The translations under genes and the position numbers were made by a program. The notes beneath the pieces are model-generated. The model was not told the DNA's origin and made no database searches. It saw nothing but the letters and a program-made list of their open reading frames with translations. Positions 1-6,240 of a DNA stretch of 13,206 bases are shown here, piece after piece (positions within the stretch are counted from its first letter, which is position 1; each line of letters opens with the position of its first letter). The DNA is taken from the sequence record MN496305.1; one strand, written 5' to 3'.

Positions 1-19
1 CCCTTTTTAAAGTCATATT
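1..19 (+). promoter_or_regulatory. Promoter of the a82-b251 operon (T9-like), TTTTTAAA box
   Basis: CCCTTTTTAAAGTCATATT about 30 nt upstream of the ATG at 37; 18/19 identical to 7319-7337 upstream of the tail operon. Confidence 0.7.
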
Positions 20-36
20 TCTTTTTTCTTCTTAAG

Positions 37-285
37 ATGTCCGCATTAGGTGATACAATCTATATTTTAAGCCTTATTTTGCCAGCTGTAGGAATTATAA
101 CAAGAAACTATCTCATCAATTTGCTGGCATTCTTCATGGGGACTATCGGCTTCTTAGTCTTTGTGCAGAACTACACAGATATTGCCTTCAGCGGAAGCAC
201 ATTCTATTTAGCGATATTTCCTTTACTGTTAGGGCTGGTCAACTTCGGCTTATTCTTCAATTGGGTTCGAGAAGAGAGGATTTAA
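37..285 (+). CDS. a82: Fusellovirus core membrane protein, SSV1 A82 homolog
   Basis: 82 aa with three hydrophobic segments; MSALGD...FNWVREERI matches recalled SSV1 A82; syntenic after vp2. Confidence 0.9.
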   Translation: MSALGDTIYILSLILPAVGIITRNYLINLLAFFMGTIGFLVFVQNYTDIAFSGSTFYLAIFPLLLGLVNFGLFFNWVREERI

Positions 286-286
286 C

Positions 287-592
287 ATGAGGGGATTTTA
301 CCATGTTGTTAACAGAGCCGATACCCGCAAAATACATAGAATACGGGGAAATCATAGATACAATATTTATTATTATCTATTTGCTGTTCAGAAAATCAAA
401 GAGCAAATCAGAACAAACTATAGGGAATCGGCTAGATACAAAATTGTTAGGTTACTATCTGGTGACATCCGCAATATTTGTGCTGTTGATAGCTCACTTT
501 GCTCAATACGCAAATTATTTGGATTACTACTTAGGCCTTATACTAGATTCATTAGTGTTTTACATGGGGCTCAGGCTGGTGATGAAGAATGA
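287..592 (+). CDS. Overlapping alternative-frame ORF, positional equivalent of SSV1 C84
   Basis: 101-aa basic ORF open across all of a92 in another frame; SSV1 has an overlapping c84/a92 pair here. Translation unproven. Confidence 0.3.
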   Translation: MRGFYHVVNRADTRKIHRIRGNHRYNIYYYLFAVQKIKEQIRTNYRESARYKIVRLLSGDIRNICAVDSSLCSIRKLFGLLLRPYTRFISVLHGAQAGDEE

Positions 593-596
593 GTAA
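303..596 (+). CDS. a92: Fusellovirus core membrane protein, SSV1 A92 homolog
   Basis: 97 aa hydrophobic protein with 3 probable TM segments, between a82 and b277; its stop overlaps the b277 start (ATGAGTAA). Confidence 0.8.
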   Translation: MLLTEPIPAKYIEYGEIIDTIFIIIYLLFRKSKSKSEQTIGNRLDTKLLGYYLVTSAIFVLLIAHFAQYANYLDYYLGLILDSLVFYMGLRLVMKNE

Positions 597-1365
597 TGGA
601 AGTTTGGAAAAGGCAATGGAAGAAGCACTTCGCAATGCAAAGAGCCTAGAGGAGTTGGAAGCACTCTACAGACAGATACCACAACCCTCAAAGAAACTCT
701 ACAAAGTCTATGAGAAGAGGAAATTCGAATTAAAGTACGCTGAGTACAAAAAGTTAAAGGAAGAACTTTCACAAAGGAAGAAGAAGCTAAAGAAAGAGAA
801 AGTTGATATTCATGTTAAGATAGCAAAGAAATGGATAAACAGCAGACTGTTCACAGCAGAGCACTATGTTGCATTGCTTCAGCAAAGTAAAGATGGGCTT
901 CAGCTTATGTTTTTGCGTAAGGCAAAATTGGTTGAGAATCAAGGTTATCTGATGTTGGAGGTCCGCAAACTAAGAAAGGCATGGGTGTTGCAAAGCGAAC
1001 CAATTCTACTTGAAAAGAGCAGAATCTTCTTTGGGAAGAAATTTGTTGCAGTGCACTTTGTCTTGCCAGATTTTCCATATACTCTTGGCATAGCTGTGGA
1101 TGAAAAATTAAGGCAGTTAGCAATCAAAGGAGTAAACGGCCCACAGATATTGCATAGTGTCGTCAGGACCAAGTTCTTTGAGGCACTGGCCCGTGTTGGG
1201 ACAGGGCCAGATTATATGATGCTTATTATTGGCGCAGTGATGGGAATAGGACTAGGAATGGCGATTGGCTTCGGCGTATCGCTATTCCACTTAACATCTA
1301 CTCCACCCGCTCATACTAACACAACAACCACAACCATGAATCCATTCCCTACGTCAACAAAATGA
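589..1365 (+). CDS. b277: Fusellovirus core protein, SSV1 B277 homolog
   Basis: 258 aa; Lys-rich N-terminus, C-terminal TM (IIGAVMGIGLGMAIGFGV) and Thr-rich tail, as in B277; syntenic. Confidence 0.9.
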   Translation: MSNGSLEKAMEEALRNAKSLEELEALYRQIPQPSKKLYKVYEKRKFELKYAEYKKLKEELSQRKKKLKKEKVDIHVKIAKKWINSRLFTAEHYVALLQQSKDGLQLMFLRKAKLVENQGYLMLEVRKLRKAWVLQSEPILLEKSRIFFGKKFVAVHFVLPDFPYTLGIAVDEKLRQLAIKGVNGPQILHSVVRTKFFEALARVGTGPDYMMLIIGAVMGIGLGMAIGFGVSLFHLTSTPPAHTNTTTTTMNPFPTSTK

Positions 1366-1374
1366 GGTGAGACA

Positions 1375-1842
1375 ATGCCCAACAAAAAAGCATCCGGTAA
1401 TGCTGTCGAAGAGCTAAAGAAAGAAAATGAAGAGCTAAGAAAGAAAATTGAGGAATTGGAAGCTTTGTTAAATGGACCAGAAGAGGAAGATGAGGAAATA
1501 CAAGAAATCGAGAACCCTTACACAGTCACAAACCGAGCAATCTCAGAGTTAGTTGAGCCCAAAGACACTATGTTATATCTTTCGGGAAGTCAGATTAATC
1601 TGATTTTATCCGCTTACGAATTCGCCCGTTTACCCGTTTATTTTGGGGAAGAGCCTGTGCTAGAGTTGGCTGAGTTTGCGAGTAAACTGAAGTACTACTT
1701 AGTGAGTAAGGGCGGACGCGGTAGAAGGGATATACTCAGAGTGCTGAGAGTAAGCAGTGGCCAGACTAGGGAAAATGTCAATAAATCAATCTTTAGGCAA
1801 CTACTACAAGGGGGGAAAGATTCAGATGTCGAAGAAGACTGA
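1375..1842 (+). CDS. a154: Fusellovirus core protein, SSV1 A154 homolog
   Basis: 155 aa; GGTGA RBS; N-terminal coiled coil (ELKKENEELRKKIEELEALL); conserved VSKGGRGRRDILRVLRV; immediately upstream of b251. Confidence 0.9.
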   Translation: MPNKKASGNAVEELKKENEELRKKIEELEALLNGPEEEDEEIQEIENPYTVTNRAISELVEPKDTMLYLSGSQINLILSAYEFARLPVYFGEEPVLELAEFASKLKYYLVSKGGRGRRDILRVLRVSSGQTRENVNKSIFRQLLQGGKDSDVEED

Positions 1843-2548
1843 AGAACAGAAAGCTGATGATTTACTATGGTTGGCACAAAAAATAGTGTCAGCATATAAG
1901 AATGTAGGATTTGTATCAGCAGTGATTTTCGGCAAACAAGGAAGTGGCAAAACAACATACGCATTTAAAGTAGCGAGAGACGTTTTCTACAAACTATATA
2001 ATTTACAGACAAAGGATGAGGCATGGCAATATGTTAGGACCAGCTATTTCTTTGAATTGCCAGAAGCATTGATGAAGATACAGGATGCAATAGACAATGA
2101 CTACCGCATTCCATTGATAATCTTTGATGATGCGGGAATATGGCTTTCAAAATATGTGTGGTATGAGGACTACATGAAGGCGTTTTATAAAATATATGCA
2201 CTCATACGAACTAGGGTGTCGGCTGTTATCTTCACTACACCCAGCCCAGAAGATATAGCATTCTTCTTAAGGGAAAAAGGATGGTACCAAATCAAGATTA
2301 GTATGATAAATAGAAAGGATATGATTGCGAGAGCAACTTTATACGCTAAAGATTTCGCAAGGAATACAAAGGGCGAAATTGTCACTCAGGTGAAGACAAA
2401 GGCGTTAGATATGTTTAAGGTTGATATTCCAAATAATATATATGAGGAATATATGCAAAAGAGAAGAGAAACAGAAAGAAAATTACTCGCAGAGCTGAAA
2501 CAAATACTATCAAGTTTTACGGAAAAGAACGCCGTTATTGAGGCTTGA
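1826..2548 (+). CDS. b251: P-loop ATPase, SSV1 B251 homolog (DnaA-like AAA; replication or packaging)
   Basis: Walker [10 protein letters not shown] and Walker [12 protein letters not shown] 1826 (MSKK..., 240 aa) is preferred over the track's start at 1757. Confidence 0.92.
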
Positions 2549-3575
2549 AAACGGGGGTAGGCTCATTTATAATATTTTTCAACCACTCCGCGTATTTCTT
2601 GTAGTGTTCTTTTGCAACACCAAATAATGAAACATAATGTTGTGTAGCAACTCTTATCGGTTTTCTACCTTGAATAAAATCTATGACGTCTAGCGGAATA
2701 CCTAATTGGGCCATTTGAGTTGCGACAAATTTTCTTATGTATTTTATGCGCACAGCGTCTTTGTACGTTTTCTCAAATTTTGCAATTACACCGCGCGTTA
2801 TATTTGTTTGTCGTAGTGGCGTTATGTGGAATAGATAAAAGGACCCTTTATAGCCTCTGGTCCAACTGATTGGATAATAACGAATCTCACCATCAGCGAT
2901 ATCACGCTCTGGCTCTCTTAATACTTTTAGTATTTCAATTAATCTAGCCCCTGACTCCAAAGCTAAGCGATAAACGAGATAAACGTTATCGCTATACTCT
3001 TTCGCAAGCAACAATGTTTGCTTTATTTGTTCAATTGTAGGAACGTATAGGTCAGCCTTAGTTGATTTTACTTTAATGATCTTCAACACTTTATCAGCAA
3101 ACTCCTCACTAATTAAGCCACGTAATGCTAAGTATTTTGCAAATAGTCTGTACGCTTTCTGTGAATTTCTACTATCTGTATATTTGCGCCTTAACGCATT
3201 GATGTATTCTTTTACTGTTTCTTCAGATATTCTTCTTTTATTGATCAAATATTCAAAGAACCCGTTAATGTTGCCGTCTGTCGCATATTGGCGTAAATTG
3301 GCAACCACGCCAATTTTACGCCGTTCTTCTTTTTCAGACGGGCCTCCCAAGCCGGTGATCCCGGGTTCAAATCCCGGCGGCCGCATAGTGGGGGATTCCC
3401 CCACACCCCCATTTTCTTTCAATTTAATGTATGTTTCTACGACATCAGTTAAGGGACCTACATAAGTTTCCTTTAACTTACCGTTTATCGTTCTCAGTAT
3501 ATAAACATAATACTTCCCTTTTCTTTCCCTTATGATTACATCACCATATTTATAACGCGTCTTATCTTTTGTCAT
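2535..3575 (-). CDS. int: SSV-type tyrosine integrase (SSV1 D335 family), intact
   Basis: 346 aa; ESGARL, KYIRKF, QGR and QHY catalytic motifs; N-terminus [12 protein letters not shown] as in SSV1 Int; attP translated as [14 protein letters not shown]. Confidence 0.97.
3341..3385 (+). other. attP core = 3' half of tRNA-Gly(CCC), inside the integrase gene
   Basis: GGC-CTCCCAA-GCC anticodon arm (CCC), T-arm CCGGG-TTCAAAT-CCCGG, acceptor strand GCGGCCGCA. No 5' half or D-arm, so not a full tRNA. Confidence 0.92.
3388..3404. repeat. GC-rich hairpin next to attP
   Basis: GTGGGGG-ATT-CCCCCAC, perfect 7-bp stem directly after the attP core. Confidence 0.7.
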
Positions 3576-3595
3576 ATTCCCCTAATGTATTATGA

Positions 3596-3625
3596 TTGCC
3601 AAAAGAGGTTTATAAGCTCTGGCAA
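3596..3625 (-). promoter_or_regulatory. Putative integrase promoter (TTTATAA) inside an inverted repeat
   Basis: TATA-like element about 33-40 nt upstream of the int ATG, flanked by TTGCC-aaa-AGAG ... CTCT-GGCAA. Confidence 0.45.
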
Positions 3626-3745
3626 CTCGTAAATTTTTGCCGTTAAAAAACGTAGAATTGAAAGTAGACGGCAAAGATTCCTAGGCAGTAATACTAAAAA
3701 TATCGTATTATTATTATATAGTTATTTGAGCAAATTACCTATTAC

Positions 3746-3813
3746 GCTAATAGCAGCATTGCTGCTACTAATAGCAGCGATTTAGCAAAACATTGCTGCT
3801 AATAGCAGCATTG
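3746..3813. repeat. Palindromic repeat array, 3x CTAATAGCAGC interleaved with GCTGCTA
   Basis: CTAATAGCAGC at 3747, 3768 and 3799; hairpins TAGCAGC-att-GCTGCTA (3751-3767) and GCTGCTA-a-TAGCAGC (3795-3809). Confidence 0.85.
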
Positions 3814-3818
3814 TCGTA

Positions 3819-4373
3819 TTACTTTACGTAGACTGAAAGCCATCTCTTAAACTGAGATGGCTTCATCCAGTCTTTCCATCTTGTCAGCACATATGTTCTC
3901 TCGCCCTTTGCAAACTCTTCTGAGACGACTGCTTTTCCATGCTTTTCCAATGTTCTCAACAGTGTGAAAGGCATGAATCTAACTTCCCCTTCTGAATCAG
4001 CAATATTCATGAACACAGCTTTGTATCCCTTAGATTCTAAGATTTCCGCAACACTAACTTTTACGCCTAACACAGCAATTACTGAGCCTTGCATATTCAT
4101 CTTATGAGCTCTGCTTTTACTCTGTCCCTTCGTCAAAGAAGTACCAGTAACATCAAGATATAATTTGAAGCGGGGAATGTAAAAATCAAACTTCTTGAAA
4201 GGATCCCCTTCCCATGTTTCGTCTACTCTGTCAGTTGACAATACACCAATTCCATTCACTGTAATGTCCTTTTCCTTAAGATTTAGGACCAAACGTAGCC
4301 ATTTTTTCGCAATCTCTTCCCTAATTGAAGATATAGCCCAATACTTTTCGTACTTGTCTTTAAGCTCACTCAT
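3819..4373 (-). CDS. d244: PD-(D/E)xK-like nuclease, SSV1 D244 / SSV-RH D212 family
   Basis: KYW..RE, FDFYI..LYLDVTG and GERTY motifs parallel D244 (KYW..RE, YDY..VEVTG, GEKPY). ATG 4373 has the better-spaced GAGGG RBS; 4379 is an alternative start. Confidence 0.8.
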   Translation of the reverse strand: MSELKDKYEKYWAISSIREEIAKKWLRLVLNLKEKDITVNGIGVLSTDRVDETWEGDPFKKFDFYIPRFKLYLDVTGTSLTKGQSKSRAHKMNMQGSVIAVLGVKVSVAEILESKGYKAVFMNIADSEGEVRFMPFTLLRTLEKHGKAVVSEEFAKGERTYVLTRWKDWMKPSQFKRWLSVYVK

Positions 4374-4545
4374 GTTCATCCCTCAGATGGTAGAGGTCCG
4401 CAAAGATTTGTTGGCTCAGAAACAAGGCCTTATCTATTTTCTCTTTGCAGTCATTCTCACATGCCAGCTCTATCTTGATTTCGTGAACAAGGGTTAGTAG
4501 TTCCCTTATTTCTTCATCCAAAGTTCTCAATATATCAGAGTCCAT
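4366..4545 (-). CDS. d63: SSV1 D63 homolog (helical-hairpin adaptor), 59 aa, not in the ORF track
   Basis: Hand translation MDSDILRTLDEEIRELLTLVHEIKIELACENDCKEKIDKALFLSQQIFADLYHLRDEHE; LDEEIRELLTLVHEIKI matches D63 LDEDVRELLSLIHEIKI; overlaps both neighbouring genes. Confidence 0.85.
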   Translation of the reverse strand: MDSDILRTLDEEIRELLTLVHEIKIELACENDCKEKIDKALFLSQQIFADLYHLRDEHE

Positions 4546-4939: not shown

Positions 4940-5176
4940 TCATGCTTGGGCACCGTTTCTATTGGGTTTCCATATTAGTGTTAGGGGGTAGTCTTGTCTT
5001 TCGCAAGACCCAGTCTCATCCCTTTCGCATAGCATGTACACGAGTTTTGCTATGTTATATGCAGTACTTGGGGATACCTCAAATTGAAAAATAATGTCTT
5101 CAATTGTGATTTGGCCTTTTTTCTTTAAAATTTCATACATGATTTGGGCCTTGTGAAATGTGTTTTGTCTAGGCAT
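4940..5176 (-). CDS. f112: Winged-helix DNA-binding protein, SSV1 F112 homolog (shorter)
   Basis: KAQIMYEILKKKGQITIEDIIFQFEVSPSTAYNI..CER matches F112; ATG 5176 follows a GGGTGA RBS; first gene of the leftward early operon. Confidence 0.85.
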   Translation of the reverse strand: MPRQNTFHKAQIMYEILKKKGQITIEDIIFQFEVSPSTAYNIAKLVYMLCERDETGSCERQDYPLTLIWKPNRNGAQA

Positions 5177-5183
5177 CTTTTCA

Positions 5184-5248
5184 CCCTCTATTCTTCTTCT
5201 ATTCATTCTGAGTTTAAAAGTTTTGCTCTTCTATTCTTCTTCTTTTCA
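5184..5248 (-). promoter_or_regulatory. T5-like early promoter with two pairs of 11-bp tandem operators
   Basis: Minus strand: TGAAAAGAAGA-AGAATAGAAGA, 21-nt spacer containing TTTTAAAC, then TGAATAGAAGA-AGAATAGAGGG; inverted copy of 5870-5934. Confidence 0.85.
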
Positions 5249-5307
5249 TTTTAGTTTCAACCAAGTGAGTATTCCTTATAATATAATTTGTATAATAGGG
5301 GTAAAAG

Positions 5308-5454
5308 ATGGGGTGTCAGAGAGCAGAACTACTGGCCCTTCTTGAGTATATTGAAGAAGAATGCAAAAAGAGAGACTGCATAAGCGTAGTGAGAGAGATA
5401 AAAGAGCGCGTAAAGAAGAACGCAATGCTAGAAGCGATAAACGGGCTGTACTAG
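5308..5454 (+). CDS. b49: SSV1 B49 (Tind transcript) homolog, 48 aa, not in the ORF track
   Basis: MGCQRAELLALLEYIEEECKKRDCISVVREIKERVKKNAMLEAINGLY resembles recalled B49 (MGCAKSEQVILLQYIKTNC..DC..I..EV.RRIMNNAI) and sits between the T5/T6-like promoters. Confidence 0.75.
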   Translation: MGCQRAELLALLEYIEEECKKRDCISVVREIKERVKKNAMLEAINGLY

Positions 5455-5477
5455 GCCAGCTCTTTCTATTCACTTTC

Positions 5478-5507
5478 TATTTTTTCTTTTTTTGTTTTTT
5501 TGTTTTT
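5478..5507 (+). terminator. T-rich terminator of the B49-like transcript
   Basis: Long oligo-T tracts about 25-55 nt after the stop, typical of Sulfolobales terminators. Confidence 0.55.
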
Positions 5508-5552
5508 ACTTCCAACAAAGTAAAAACAAAACTATAAAACAAAGCAATCTAC

Positions 5553-5575
5553 ATTATACAAACTGTTTGTATAAT
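5553..5575. repeat. Perfect 23-bp palindrome, candidate origin or protein-binding site
   Basis: ATTATACAAAC-T-GTTTGTATAAT, within an AT-rich imperfect inverted repeat (~5460-5650). Confidence 0.8.
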
Positions 5576-5610
5576 ATAGTTTGTTTTTGTTATAGTGGGT
5601 CTGTTATTGC

Positions 5611-5634
5611 AAACAAAAAAAAAAAAACAAAAAA
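5611..5634 (-). terminator. T-rich terminator of the F55-like transcript
   Basis: 13-A run plus flanking A tracts on the plus strand = oligo-T on the minus strand, about 20-40 nt after the RHH stop at 5653. Confidence 0.5.
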
Positions 5635-5652
5635 TGAATAGACAGAAAAAAG

Positions 5653-5817
5653 CTATGATTTCGTTAGCTCCTCTATCCTACGCCTCACTGCATCTATTAC
5701 AAACTCTTGTCTGCTAGTGTACCCAGCTTTCCCCATCTTCAAAATTTCATCTATTTGGTCTGCCAATGATTTTGGAATTTTCACCCCTACCCATTCGATT
5801 TTATCTTTTTTAGGCAT
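5653..5817 (-). CDS. f55: Ribbon-helix-helix repressor, positional and structural equivalent of SSV1 F55, 54 aa, not in the ORF track
   Basis: MPKKDKIEWVGVKIPKSLADQIDEILKMGKAGYTSRQEFVIDAVRRRIEELTKS: beta strand VGVKIP, helix, S-R-x-E-F-V..A RHH pattern; GAGGT RBS; leftward gene next to the T6-like promoter, like f55. Confidence 0.75.
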   Translation of the reverse strand: MPKKDKIEWVGVKIPKSLADQIDEILKMGKAGYTSRQEFVIDAVRRRIEELTKS

Positions 5818-5869
5818 CTTCGCTACCTCTTTTATTCTTATAGTATGTTTATCGTTAAAAAAAAGATGT

Positions 5870-5934
5870 TGAATAGAAGTAGAATAGAAGAGTAAAGTTT
5901 AAATATGAGAGTAGAATAGAAGTAGAATAGAGGT
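5870..5934 (+). promoter_or_regulatory. T6-like early promoter with two pairs of 11-bp tandem operators
   Basis: TGAATAGAAGT-AGAATAGAAGA, 21-nt spacer containing TTTAAATA, then AGAATAGAAGT-AGAATAGAGGT, then ATG 5941. Confidence 0.87.
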
Positions 5935-5940
5935 GGCAAA

Positions 5941-6240
5941 ATGGAAACCCCCAAACCCAAATACGAAATTGTTGGGGAAGAAGAAATACATTTTTTTGTA
6001 AGAACGTTGCGTGAAGAAGAACCACCATATGACAAATACATTGAAATAGAATTTGAGAAGCCTTTTGCTGATACTGGCAGATTCTATATTGGCGACATAA
6101 GCGTAGAATCCGTCGAAAGAGAGGTAAAATACATATTACAATTATATAAAATATATAACAAAACAGCTAATGGCGAATTGCAAAATGAAATACGAAAAGA
6201 GATCCTTATAACTTTAGCGAAAATTGCCGGCATGTTGTGA
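5941..6240 (+). CDS. a100: SSV1 A100 homolog
   Basis: PY..YI.I, LYKIY and IRKEILITLAKI match A100 (PY..YLHI, LYEVY, IQKEALLTIAKI); first gene after the T6-like promoter. Confidence 0.75.
   Translation: METPKPKYEIVGEEEIHFFVRTLREEEPPYDKYIEIEFEKPFADTGRFYIGDISVESVEREVKYILQLYKIYNKTANGELQNEIRKEILITLAKIAGML

Follow-up and report, generated by a model that had tools for sequence, protein, structure and literature searches.

A perfect palindrome built from a conserved word in the B49-F55 spacer of Sulfolobus spindle-shaped virus SSV19, and its possible role in replication

What does a perfect 23-bp palindrome do in the AT-rich spacer between two convergent genes of a Sulfolobus spindle-shaped virus? 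The window analyzed here, a stretch of 13,206 nucleotides from sequence record MN496305.1, corresponds at 100% identity to the complete circular genome of SSV19. In SSV1, B49 (Tind) and F55 (Tlys) form the induction/lysogeny pair, and the interval between them, described as palindrome-rich, has been proposed, though never shown, to be the origin of replication (PMC9608457; PMC6080066; bioRxiv 10.64898/2026.06.17.732947); indeed, no SSV origin has been characterized in the literature. A preliminary description of this DNA had assigned the palindrome to the interval equivalent to the one proposed for SSV1, and the SSV19 element does lie between the B49 and F55 genes.

The B49-F55 spacer of SSV19

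The features of the region are the following:

4940-5176, minus strand: F-112-family winged-helix gene, first gene of a T5-like operon
5287-5297, plus strand: third copy of the 11-mer, TTTGTATAATA, at -21 to -11 before the B49 start, after a TATA-like stretch
5308-5454, plus strand: B49 homologue, 48 aa, unannotated in MN496305
5455-5652, no strand: B49-F55 spacer, 198 bp, dyad-symmetric, 24% G+C
5461-5487, minus strand: operator-like repeat just 3′ of the B49 stop, matching the T5 repeat at 78%
5480-5507, plus strand: four oligo-T runs (T6, T7, T7, T5), proximal terminator signals of the B49 (Tind-like) transcript
5498-5531: perfect 14-6-14 hairpin, the longest in the SSV19 genome, 22 nt to the left of the palindrome
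5531-5596, no strand: extended imperfect dyad around the palindrome, its left arm A-rich and its right arm T-rich
5553-5575, no strand: perfect 11-1-11 palindrome, ATTATACAAAC-T-GTTTGTATAAT
5615-5634, minus strand: A13-C-A6 on the plus strand, i.e., oligo-T on the minus strand, proximal terminator signals of the F55 (Tlys-like) transcript
5634-5652, plus strand: operator-like GAATAGA word just 3′ of the F55 stop, inverted relative to 5461-5487
5653-5817, minus strand: F55 homologue, 54 aa, a repressor of the ribbon-helix-helix type

Since the flanking genes are convergent homologues of B49 and F55, the palindrome sits in the 198-bp spacer between them. The 48-aa ORF is 55% identical to SSV1 B49, which bears out its earlier designation as “B49-like,” and the F55 homologue is about 65% identical to SSV1 F55. 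The start of the F112-like gene is probably 5176 rather than 5206: the shorter form aligns from residue 1 with the SSV20 homologue, and a GGTGAAAAG-ATG context precedes both this start and the F55 gene. Where the B49 homologue lies, the deposited record annotates a CDS at 5361-5537 (plus strand), which has a Phe-rich tail that crosses the oligo-T runs and is probably spurious. A 99-aa A100/DUF5517-like ORF at 5941-6240 (plus strand), conserved in SSV20, SSV21, and SSV1, is missing from the same annotation; its Pfam score of 24.9 bits falls just short of the threshold of 27 bits. The genome as a whole is a mosaic, in which positions 1-4522 match SSV22 at 93%, the flanks of the B49/F55 module match SSV20, and 5480-5628 is unique, representing a replaced cassette relative to SSV20. 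Two SSV19-like proviral stretches (L135 and L137) are found in a host chromosome of 2.55 Mb (CP045706.1); their palindrome is identical to that of the virus record, and the sole differences from this record are in how many A residues make up the poly-A runs at 5615-5627 (A13) and 5646-5651 (A6).

The palindrome is present exactly where it was first described, at 5553-5575, and only about 3% of shuffled genomes match its length. When perfect inverted repeats with a loop of up to 6 nt were scored in dinucleotide-preserving shuffles of the SSV19 genome (n = 300), arms of at least 11 nt were encountered in 3.3% of the shuffles and arms of at least 12 nt in none of the 300. Among the perfect inverted repeats of SSV19 (loop ≤6 nt) the palindrome ranks second, behind the hairpin at 5498-5531, whose left arm is the final oligo-T run 3′ of the B49 homologue; hairpin and palindrome, which rank first and second in the genome, are therefore within 80 bp of each other. 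The imperfect extensions that had been noticed beside the palindrome (5531-5547 and 5581-5596) pair with each other in predicted folds. The T-rich arm of this larger dyad contains second-tier oligo-T runs in both directions and is homologous to the motif-side arm of the spacers of SSV1 and of two metagenome contigs, L010 and L012.

The surroundings are very AT-rich, as the preliminary description had stated (24% G+C for 5455-5652). Predicted folding of the spacer is far stronger than that of shuffled sequences, with z scores of -6.9 for DNA and of -7.8 and -9.4 for RNA of the two strands, and the predicted fold of the whole spacer is one nested dyad enclosing two inner hairpins. Positions 5462-5661 form the least stable 200-bp duplex in SSV19 (z = 3.5, 22% G+C); at the scale of 60-100 bp, the promoter regions of the genome are about as unstable as the spacer. 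Terminators of the Sulfolobales are oligo(dT) runs (bioRxiv 10.64898/2026.06.17.732947), and the SSV19 spacer presents the convergent genes and the oligo-T runs on both strands that characterize a bidirectional terminator. This assignment covers the spacer and does not account for the conserved word described below.

At both ends, the spacer carries repeats (5461-5487 and 5634-5652) that resemble those of the T5-like and T6-like promoters at 5187-5252 and 5868-5931. In SSV19 and SSV20, each of these promoters holds two GAATAGAAG-type repeats that are 43 bp apart, and in the T5-T6 region of SSV21 and SSV22 (L003/L004) there are GATTGATAGAT-type repeats together with different small genes that replace B49 and F55. 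Judging by these four genomes, operator repeats and regulators are exchanged together.

The type of region is already known from SSV1, whose Tind-Tlys region shares with that of SSV19 its flanking genes, its A/T-rich dyad layout, and F55-site-like repeats at both ends. What defines the SSV1 element, namely convergent B49 and F55 genes, AT-rich DNA with oligo(dT) on both strands and shared sequence above chance, is found in SSV19 as well. The flanking repeats are of the GAATAGAAG type in SSV19 and of the ATAGATAGAG type in SSV1, and SSV19 adds to the SSV1 layout the strong oligo-T runs before the center and the 14-6-14 hairpin. At the spacer center, the two viruses share the 13-nt word CATTATACAAACT, present in one copy in SSV1 and in two head-to-head copies in SSV19.

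A conserved word at the spacer center

The palindrome consists of the conserved motif gTTTGTATAATg written twice, head to head, at 5553-5563 (minus strand) and 5565-5575 (plus strand). Elements with an F55 homologue were compared, i.e., SSV20, SSV1, two IMG/VR contigs (SSV1 itself being one of the two), the metagenome contigs L010 to L013, a group of Metallosphaera-type proviruses (L008 and L138-L144), a Logan contig (L145), L149-L152, and an element of Sulfolobus tengchongensis (L146; CP146017). The half-site that the preliminary description had singled out was found in SSV1 and in seven other module-bearing elements, and in the equivalent spacers of SSV1, SSV19, and seven other elements gTTTGTATAATg is the sole invariant block, the remainder being unalignable. 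Two copies, head to head, occur only in SSV19, whereas eight relatives carry one: SSV1 (5414-5425), L010, L011, L012, L145, L151/L152, L141, and L146, in which the first base differs. By shuffling, the longest word shared with the SSV19 spacer measures 13 nt in SSV1 (p = 0.003), 14 nt in L012 (p < 0.001), and 12 nt in L010 (p = 0.024), and is no longer than expected by chance in spacers that have another center. The motif lies at most 2 nt from the spacer midpoint in SSV1, L010, and L012, and a consensus of ten copies reads A-rich, gTTTGTATAATg.tg, T-rich, so that one flank is rich in A and the other in T. The exact motif is absent from SSV2, SSV4, SSV7, SSV8, SSV10, SSV21, and SSV22, all of which are devoid of the module, and a 14-mer containing it returned only scattered chance matches, in unrelated contigs, when compared with viral contigs.

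The orientation of the motif relative to the F55 gene is the same in four cases and opposite in four. In L010 and L011, the motif has the same 48-nt surroundings, which are turned around relative to the flanking B49 and F55 genes, hence the spacer core has been inverted; by eye the inverted stretch extends over about 78 bp, of which the central 48 nt were checked to be identical. This pair shows that the core flips between the inverted repeat arrays. The motif is also kept, with a changed gene order and different flanking repeats, in the Metallosphaera-type provirus L141 and in L146 of S. tengchongensis, and overall it persists across elements with three types of flanking repeats. In L141 and L146, the F112-like gene is followed by two tandem F55 paralogues with the motif-bearing core between them and then by B49, which is convergent with the second F55 paralogue and separated from it by almost no spacer; in such an arrangement, Tind-like transcription would run antisense through a repressor gene. 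A 13.3-kb contig labelled Brevundimonas (L008/L140; NZ_JBLYQL010000032.1) contains fusellovirus F55-like, B49-like, and zinc-finger B129-like genes, with the same F55-like protein as in Metallosphaera assemblies, and looks like a contaminant or a mislabelled contig in a bacterial assembly.

Other elements have other centers. The spacers of L007 and L013 are centered on two tandem copies of the self-complementary word GTGTTAACAC, and in L007 this pair amounts to another perfect 11-1-11 palindrome, at the same place and of unrelated sequence. L149 and L150 have a perfect 18-bp palindrome at the center, and SSV20, which retains the module, has large nested repeats of unrelated sequence. In the Logan contig of SRR28178319 (L145), an SSV1-like relative, some 75 bp have been inserted into the B49-F55 spacer, and at 1700-1725 this insertion holds a perfect mini-ORB core, TTCCAGTGGAA, with GGGGT after it and a small palindrome beside it; the mini-ORB is the motif bound by the host initiator Orc1/Cdc6, and the scan relied on the ORB pattern of Sulfolobaceae (PMC4164010).

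With palindromes of unrelated sequence at the centers of L007, L149, and SSV20, and with spacer folding at z of -7 to -9, the palindrome might be thought to act as a structure, i.e., as a hairpin or cruciform serving as terminator stem, stabilizer of an RNA 3′ end, or nick site for rolling-circle replication. Its stem does lie between upstream A-rich and downstream T-rich runs, much like a bidirectional intrinsic terminator. However, eight relatives keep the word once and without a partner, so that the stem is not the conserved feature, and at 78°C, near the growth temperature of the host, the RNA hairpin of 23 nt should be open according to prediction (folds computed at 78°C with DNA parameters gave nonsensical structures and were disregarded). 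A scan of Rfam matched no family, the sub-threshold hairpin-like matches reaching 20-24 bits against gathering thresholds of 48-140 bits, and to our knowledge no rolling-circle Rep has been reported for fuselloviruses. Such a structural role is thus improbable in our judgment.

The inversion of the spacer core between L010 and L011, the swapping of 5480-5628 relative to SSV20, and the viability of SSV20, an isolate without the motif, would also fit a palindrome that has no function of its own, arisen as a by-product of inversion or recombination in a dyad-symmetric spacer, with the word shared by descent only. This explanation hardly seems likely, as the word is invariant amid an unalignable spacer, in elements with no more than 55-65% identity in B49 and F55, and has outlasted changes of operator type and host genus.

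Probable protein recognition of the word, and the convergent transcripts

Conservation of the sequence and not of the hairpin makes the word very probably a recognition site on duplex DNA, and the comparison points to a protein recognition site of 11-12 bp. The palindrome of SSV19 would then seat two symmetric protomers and the single word of other elements one; possible binding partners are B49, the F112-like protein, and factors of the host. Since the motif is kept across three types of flanking repeats and changed gene order, it is not an F55 operator. In SSV1, the repeats of the T5 and T6 promoters match the published F55 site, ATAGATAGAGT, and the SSV19 palindrome is unrelated to the GAATAGAAG-type repeats of the T5/T6 promoters. 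The word is also unlikely to be a promoter, because a recent cappable-seq study of SSV1 lists no transcription start at 5177-5686.

No viral protein or other ORF in the fetched flanks tracks the type of spacer center. B49 and F112-like genes were found in every element whose fetched flank extends to them, and none was without the F112-like gene; neither of the two tracks the center, both being nearly identical between elements with different centers. The 151-153-aa T5 protein does not track GTGTTAACAC either: it is present in both GTGTTAACAC-type elements and also in SSV20 and SSV21, which do not have this word. The DnaA-like protein does not co-vary with the motif among SSV19, SSV20, and SSV22. 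The consensus of the host activator Sta1 (ATNT-N8-A/TNAT) is too degenerate for site matching.

The recurrence of the 11-mer at 5287-5297, 10 nt before the B49 ATG at 5308, had been reported from the outset and is correct. With at most one mismatch, the 11-mer has three matches in SSV19 against 1.0 expected, a number reached in 22 of 200 shuffles, and two of the three are the arms of the palindrome itself; a match within the 60 nt upstream of the B49 ATG has p of about 0.013 by shuffling. The match at the promoter is real and statistically weak. From it, one dimeric regulator could be imagined to bind both the palindrome and the single half-site before B49 and so to link the induction promoter with the spacer, as the preliminary description had put forward. 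SSV19 and SSV20 both have the exact 11-mer before B49, at -21 to -11. In the comparison across lineages, these two score 10/11, as does a word shortly before B49 in L151 (p = 0.002); L010, L011, and L013 score 9/11 there (p of about 0.05), and SSV1 has an inverted 9/11 match (p = 0.066). The Tind promoter of SSV1 is regarded as non-canonical, which was counted for a shared regulator. On the other hand, pooling one shuffle p per lineage in a Fisher-type calculation by hand gives about p = 0.05, which is borderline, and L007, L012, and L141 have no match upstream of B49. The promoter word matches in four of seven lineages without co-variation with the type of center: it is kept in L013, which has a different palindrome as center, and in SSV20, which has no spacer motif. 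SSV20 does not count as independent evidence, since its promoter is about 84% identical to that of SSV19 (blastn piece 5016-5479). Moreover, the distance of the half-site from the B49 start varies (-22 in SSV19, -12 to -14 elsewhere), and the promoter stretch is low-complexity, TATAAT-like DNA that fits the spacer in two registers. Paired inverted half-sites, as in a palindromic operator, are not conserved, the eight relatives being single-copy, so a dimer on the palindrome would be a peculiarity of SSV19 and not the conserved state. One protein acting at both places is thus possible but unlikely.

The mapped 3′ ends of SSV1 transcripts are tTindB at 5349, tTlys at 5388, tTlysB at 5428 (after UV only), and tTind at 5459. 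The ends at 5388 and 5459 flank the motif at 5414-5425, which accordingly lies in the middle of a 72-nt overlap, and the spacer works as a bidirectional terminator; this explains the A/T arms without an origin and leaves the 11-mer unexplained. It is quite possible, and nearly as likely as a role at an origin, that the word is a protein site with no part in replication, a boundary or regulatory site amid the zone where Tind and Tlys termination overlap in both directions, at which a protein linked to the module (F112-like or B49) or one of the host would set the extent of convergent read-through and hence of antisense interference between repressor and inducer. In line with this role, the motif is limited to elements with the F55/B49 module, the post-UV isoform of SSV1 Tlys stops 3 nt before the motif, the SSV19 palindrome has proximal and distal oligo-T runs on each side, and the core of the inverted module of L141 is still found between convergent transcription units. 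Tlys RNA is also reported to be degraded after UV (PMC9608457), and this was counted in its favor. Nevertheless, termination in archaea needs oligo-T runs only, so that a terminator role leaves an invariant 11-mer unexplained, and the strong proximal T-runs of SSV19 should halt most transcripts before they reach the palindrome. The tTlysB end is preceded by a U5 run and may be no more than the outcome of Tlys transcription colliding with induced Tind transcription, and no protein co-varies with the type of center.

A candidate replication origin and its significance

The most likely single role of the palindrome, at a probability of roughly 0.35, is that of a landing site for the replication-initiation machinery at an origin shut by a repressor. 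In the carrier state, an F55-type repressor on the flanking repeats would close the spacer region; upon induction, this repressor would depart from the repeats, the two convergent transcripts would mostly end before the spacer center, and a protein bound at the central word would then open the A/T arms on either side. In a fuller version that we hold tentatively, and as possible only, the word would be the core of a repressor-licensed origin belonging to the F112/B49/F55 module, bound by the F112-like winged helix, B49, or a host initiator and shut by F55 on the flanking repeats until DNA damage, with the core acting as an invertible and exchangeable cassette for which GTGTTAACAC in two copies or a mini-ORB would be the other centers.

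Several observations suit the origin role. The least stable 200 bp of the genome (5462-5661) surround the word, as would befit an unwinding region, operator-like repeats bracket the spacer, and the word survives in either orientation. In equivalent spacers, L145 has a mini-ORB with a G-string and L007 an unrelated 11-1-11 palindrome. The cumulative GC skew dips locally at about 5.6-6.0 kb and is lowest near 12 kb; it tracks gene orientation and speaks neither for nor against an origin in the spacer. A fragment of SSV1 has reportedly acted as an autonomously replicating sequence when placed in a shuttle vector; this was not used as evidence.

Other results weigh on the opposite side. A scan of SSV19 for ORB and mini-ORB sequences (TCCA...GAA plus G-string) gave a best match with 5 mismatches in 20, the mini-ORB being found only in the relative L145. 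Co-occurrence of the palindrome with the putative initiator, the DnaA-like protein, fails in both comparisons: this protein is 100% identical between SSV19 and SSV22, which has neither palindrome nor module, and 46% identical between SSV19 and SSV20, which has the module with another center. The initial proposal of the palindrome as a candidate origin is partly supported, by its SSV1-equivalent interval and conserved half-site, and the mismatch between DnaA-like protein and palindrome in SSV22 speaks against it. Furthermore, the absence of the exact motif from SSV2, 4, 7, 8, 10, 21, and 22 means that it is not a general fusellovirus origin.

Known origins offer partial parallels. Archaeal ORB/mini-ORB origins, which are recognized by Orc1/Cdc6, likewise have an AT-rich unwinding region adjoining inverted protein-binding sites (candidate sites in the case of SSV19), and they differ in that SSV19 has no ORB-like sequence and no adjacent initiator gene. 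The core origin of SV40 consists of a central perfect palindrome, an AT tract, and a neighboring imperfect palindrome. The likeness to SSV19 is a functional analogy only, comprising a perfect palindrome of about 25 bp, an AT tract, a second inverted repeat, control by early gene products, and a place in the principal non-coding control region; the two are not homologous, and no helicase-initiator similar to large T antigen is known in fuselloviruses. The origin of the haloarchaeal virus SNJ2 is, like the SSV19 element, a cis element at the transcription-termination end of an operon, in which an inverted repeat that varies is joined to a conserved element (PMC13107129). In SNJ2, a conserved hairpin is nicked by a rolling-circle Rep, whereas in SSV19 the sequence is conserved and not the hairpin.

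Within the fuselloviruses, an origin with a large stem-loop, “Tori,” has been proposed upstream of the integrase gene of SSV10, where a transposon insertion was non-functional (PMC6080066). It occupies another genome location than the SSV19 palindrome and is unrelated to it in sequence; its counterpart in SSV19 is 3570-3820. SSV19, SSV20, SSV21, and SSV22, genomes that are otherwise 70-93% identical, agree at almost 100% in this non-coding region, which contains interleaved TAGCAGC/GCTGCTA palindromes, with one extra unit in SSV20. It is a rival candidate for the origin, or else may be a control region of the integrase.

A literature search, with several key papers outside its reach, found no account of the conserved word. 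What is new is this central conserved word, the fact that SSV19 has it twice, a core that can be exchanged and inverted, and a module that is widely distributed. Fuselloviruses serve as the principal model of temperate viruses in archaea and have gone forty years without a mapped replication origin. In this context, what was a “palindrome-rich region” is narrowed to one short, conserved, central word, and the F55/B49/F112 switch module, which had been described as unique to SSV1, is widespread, with single, double, inverted, or replaced centers that provide natural variants for comparison. If the origin role is true, the word would belong to the first defined fusellovirus origin and would tie the lysogeny switch directly to origin firing.
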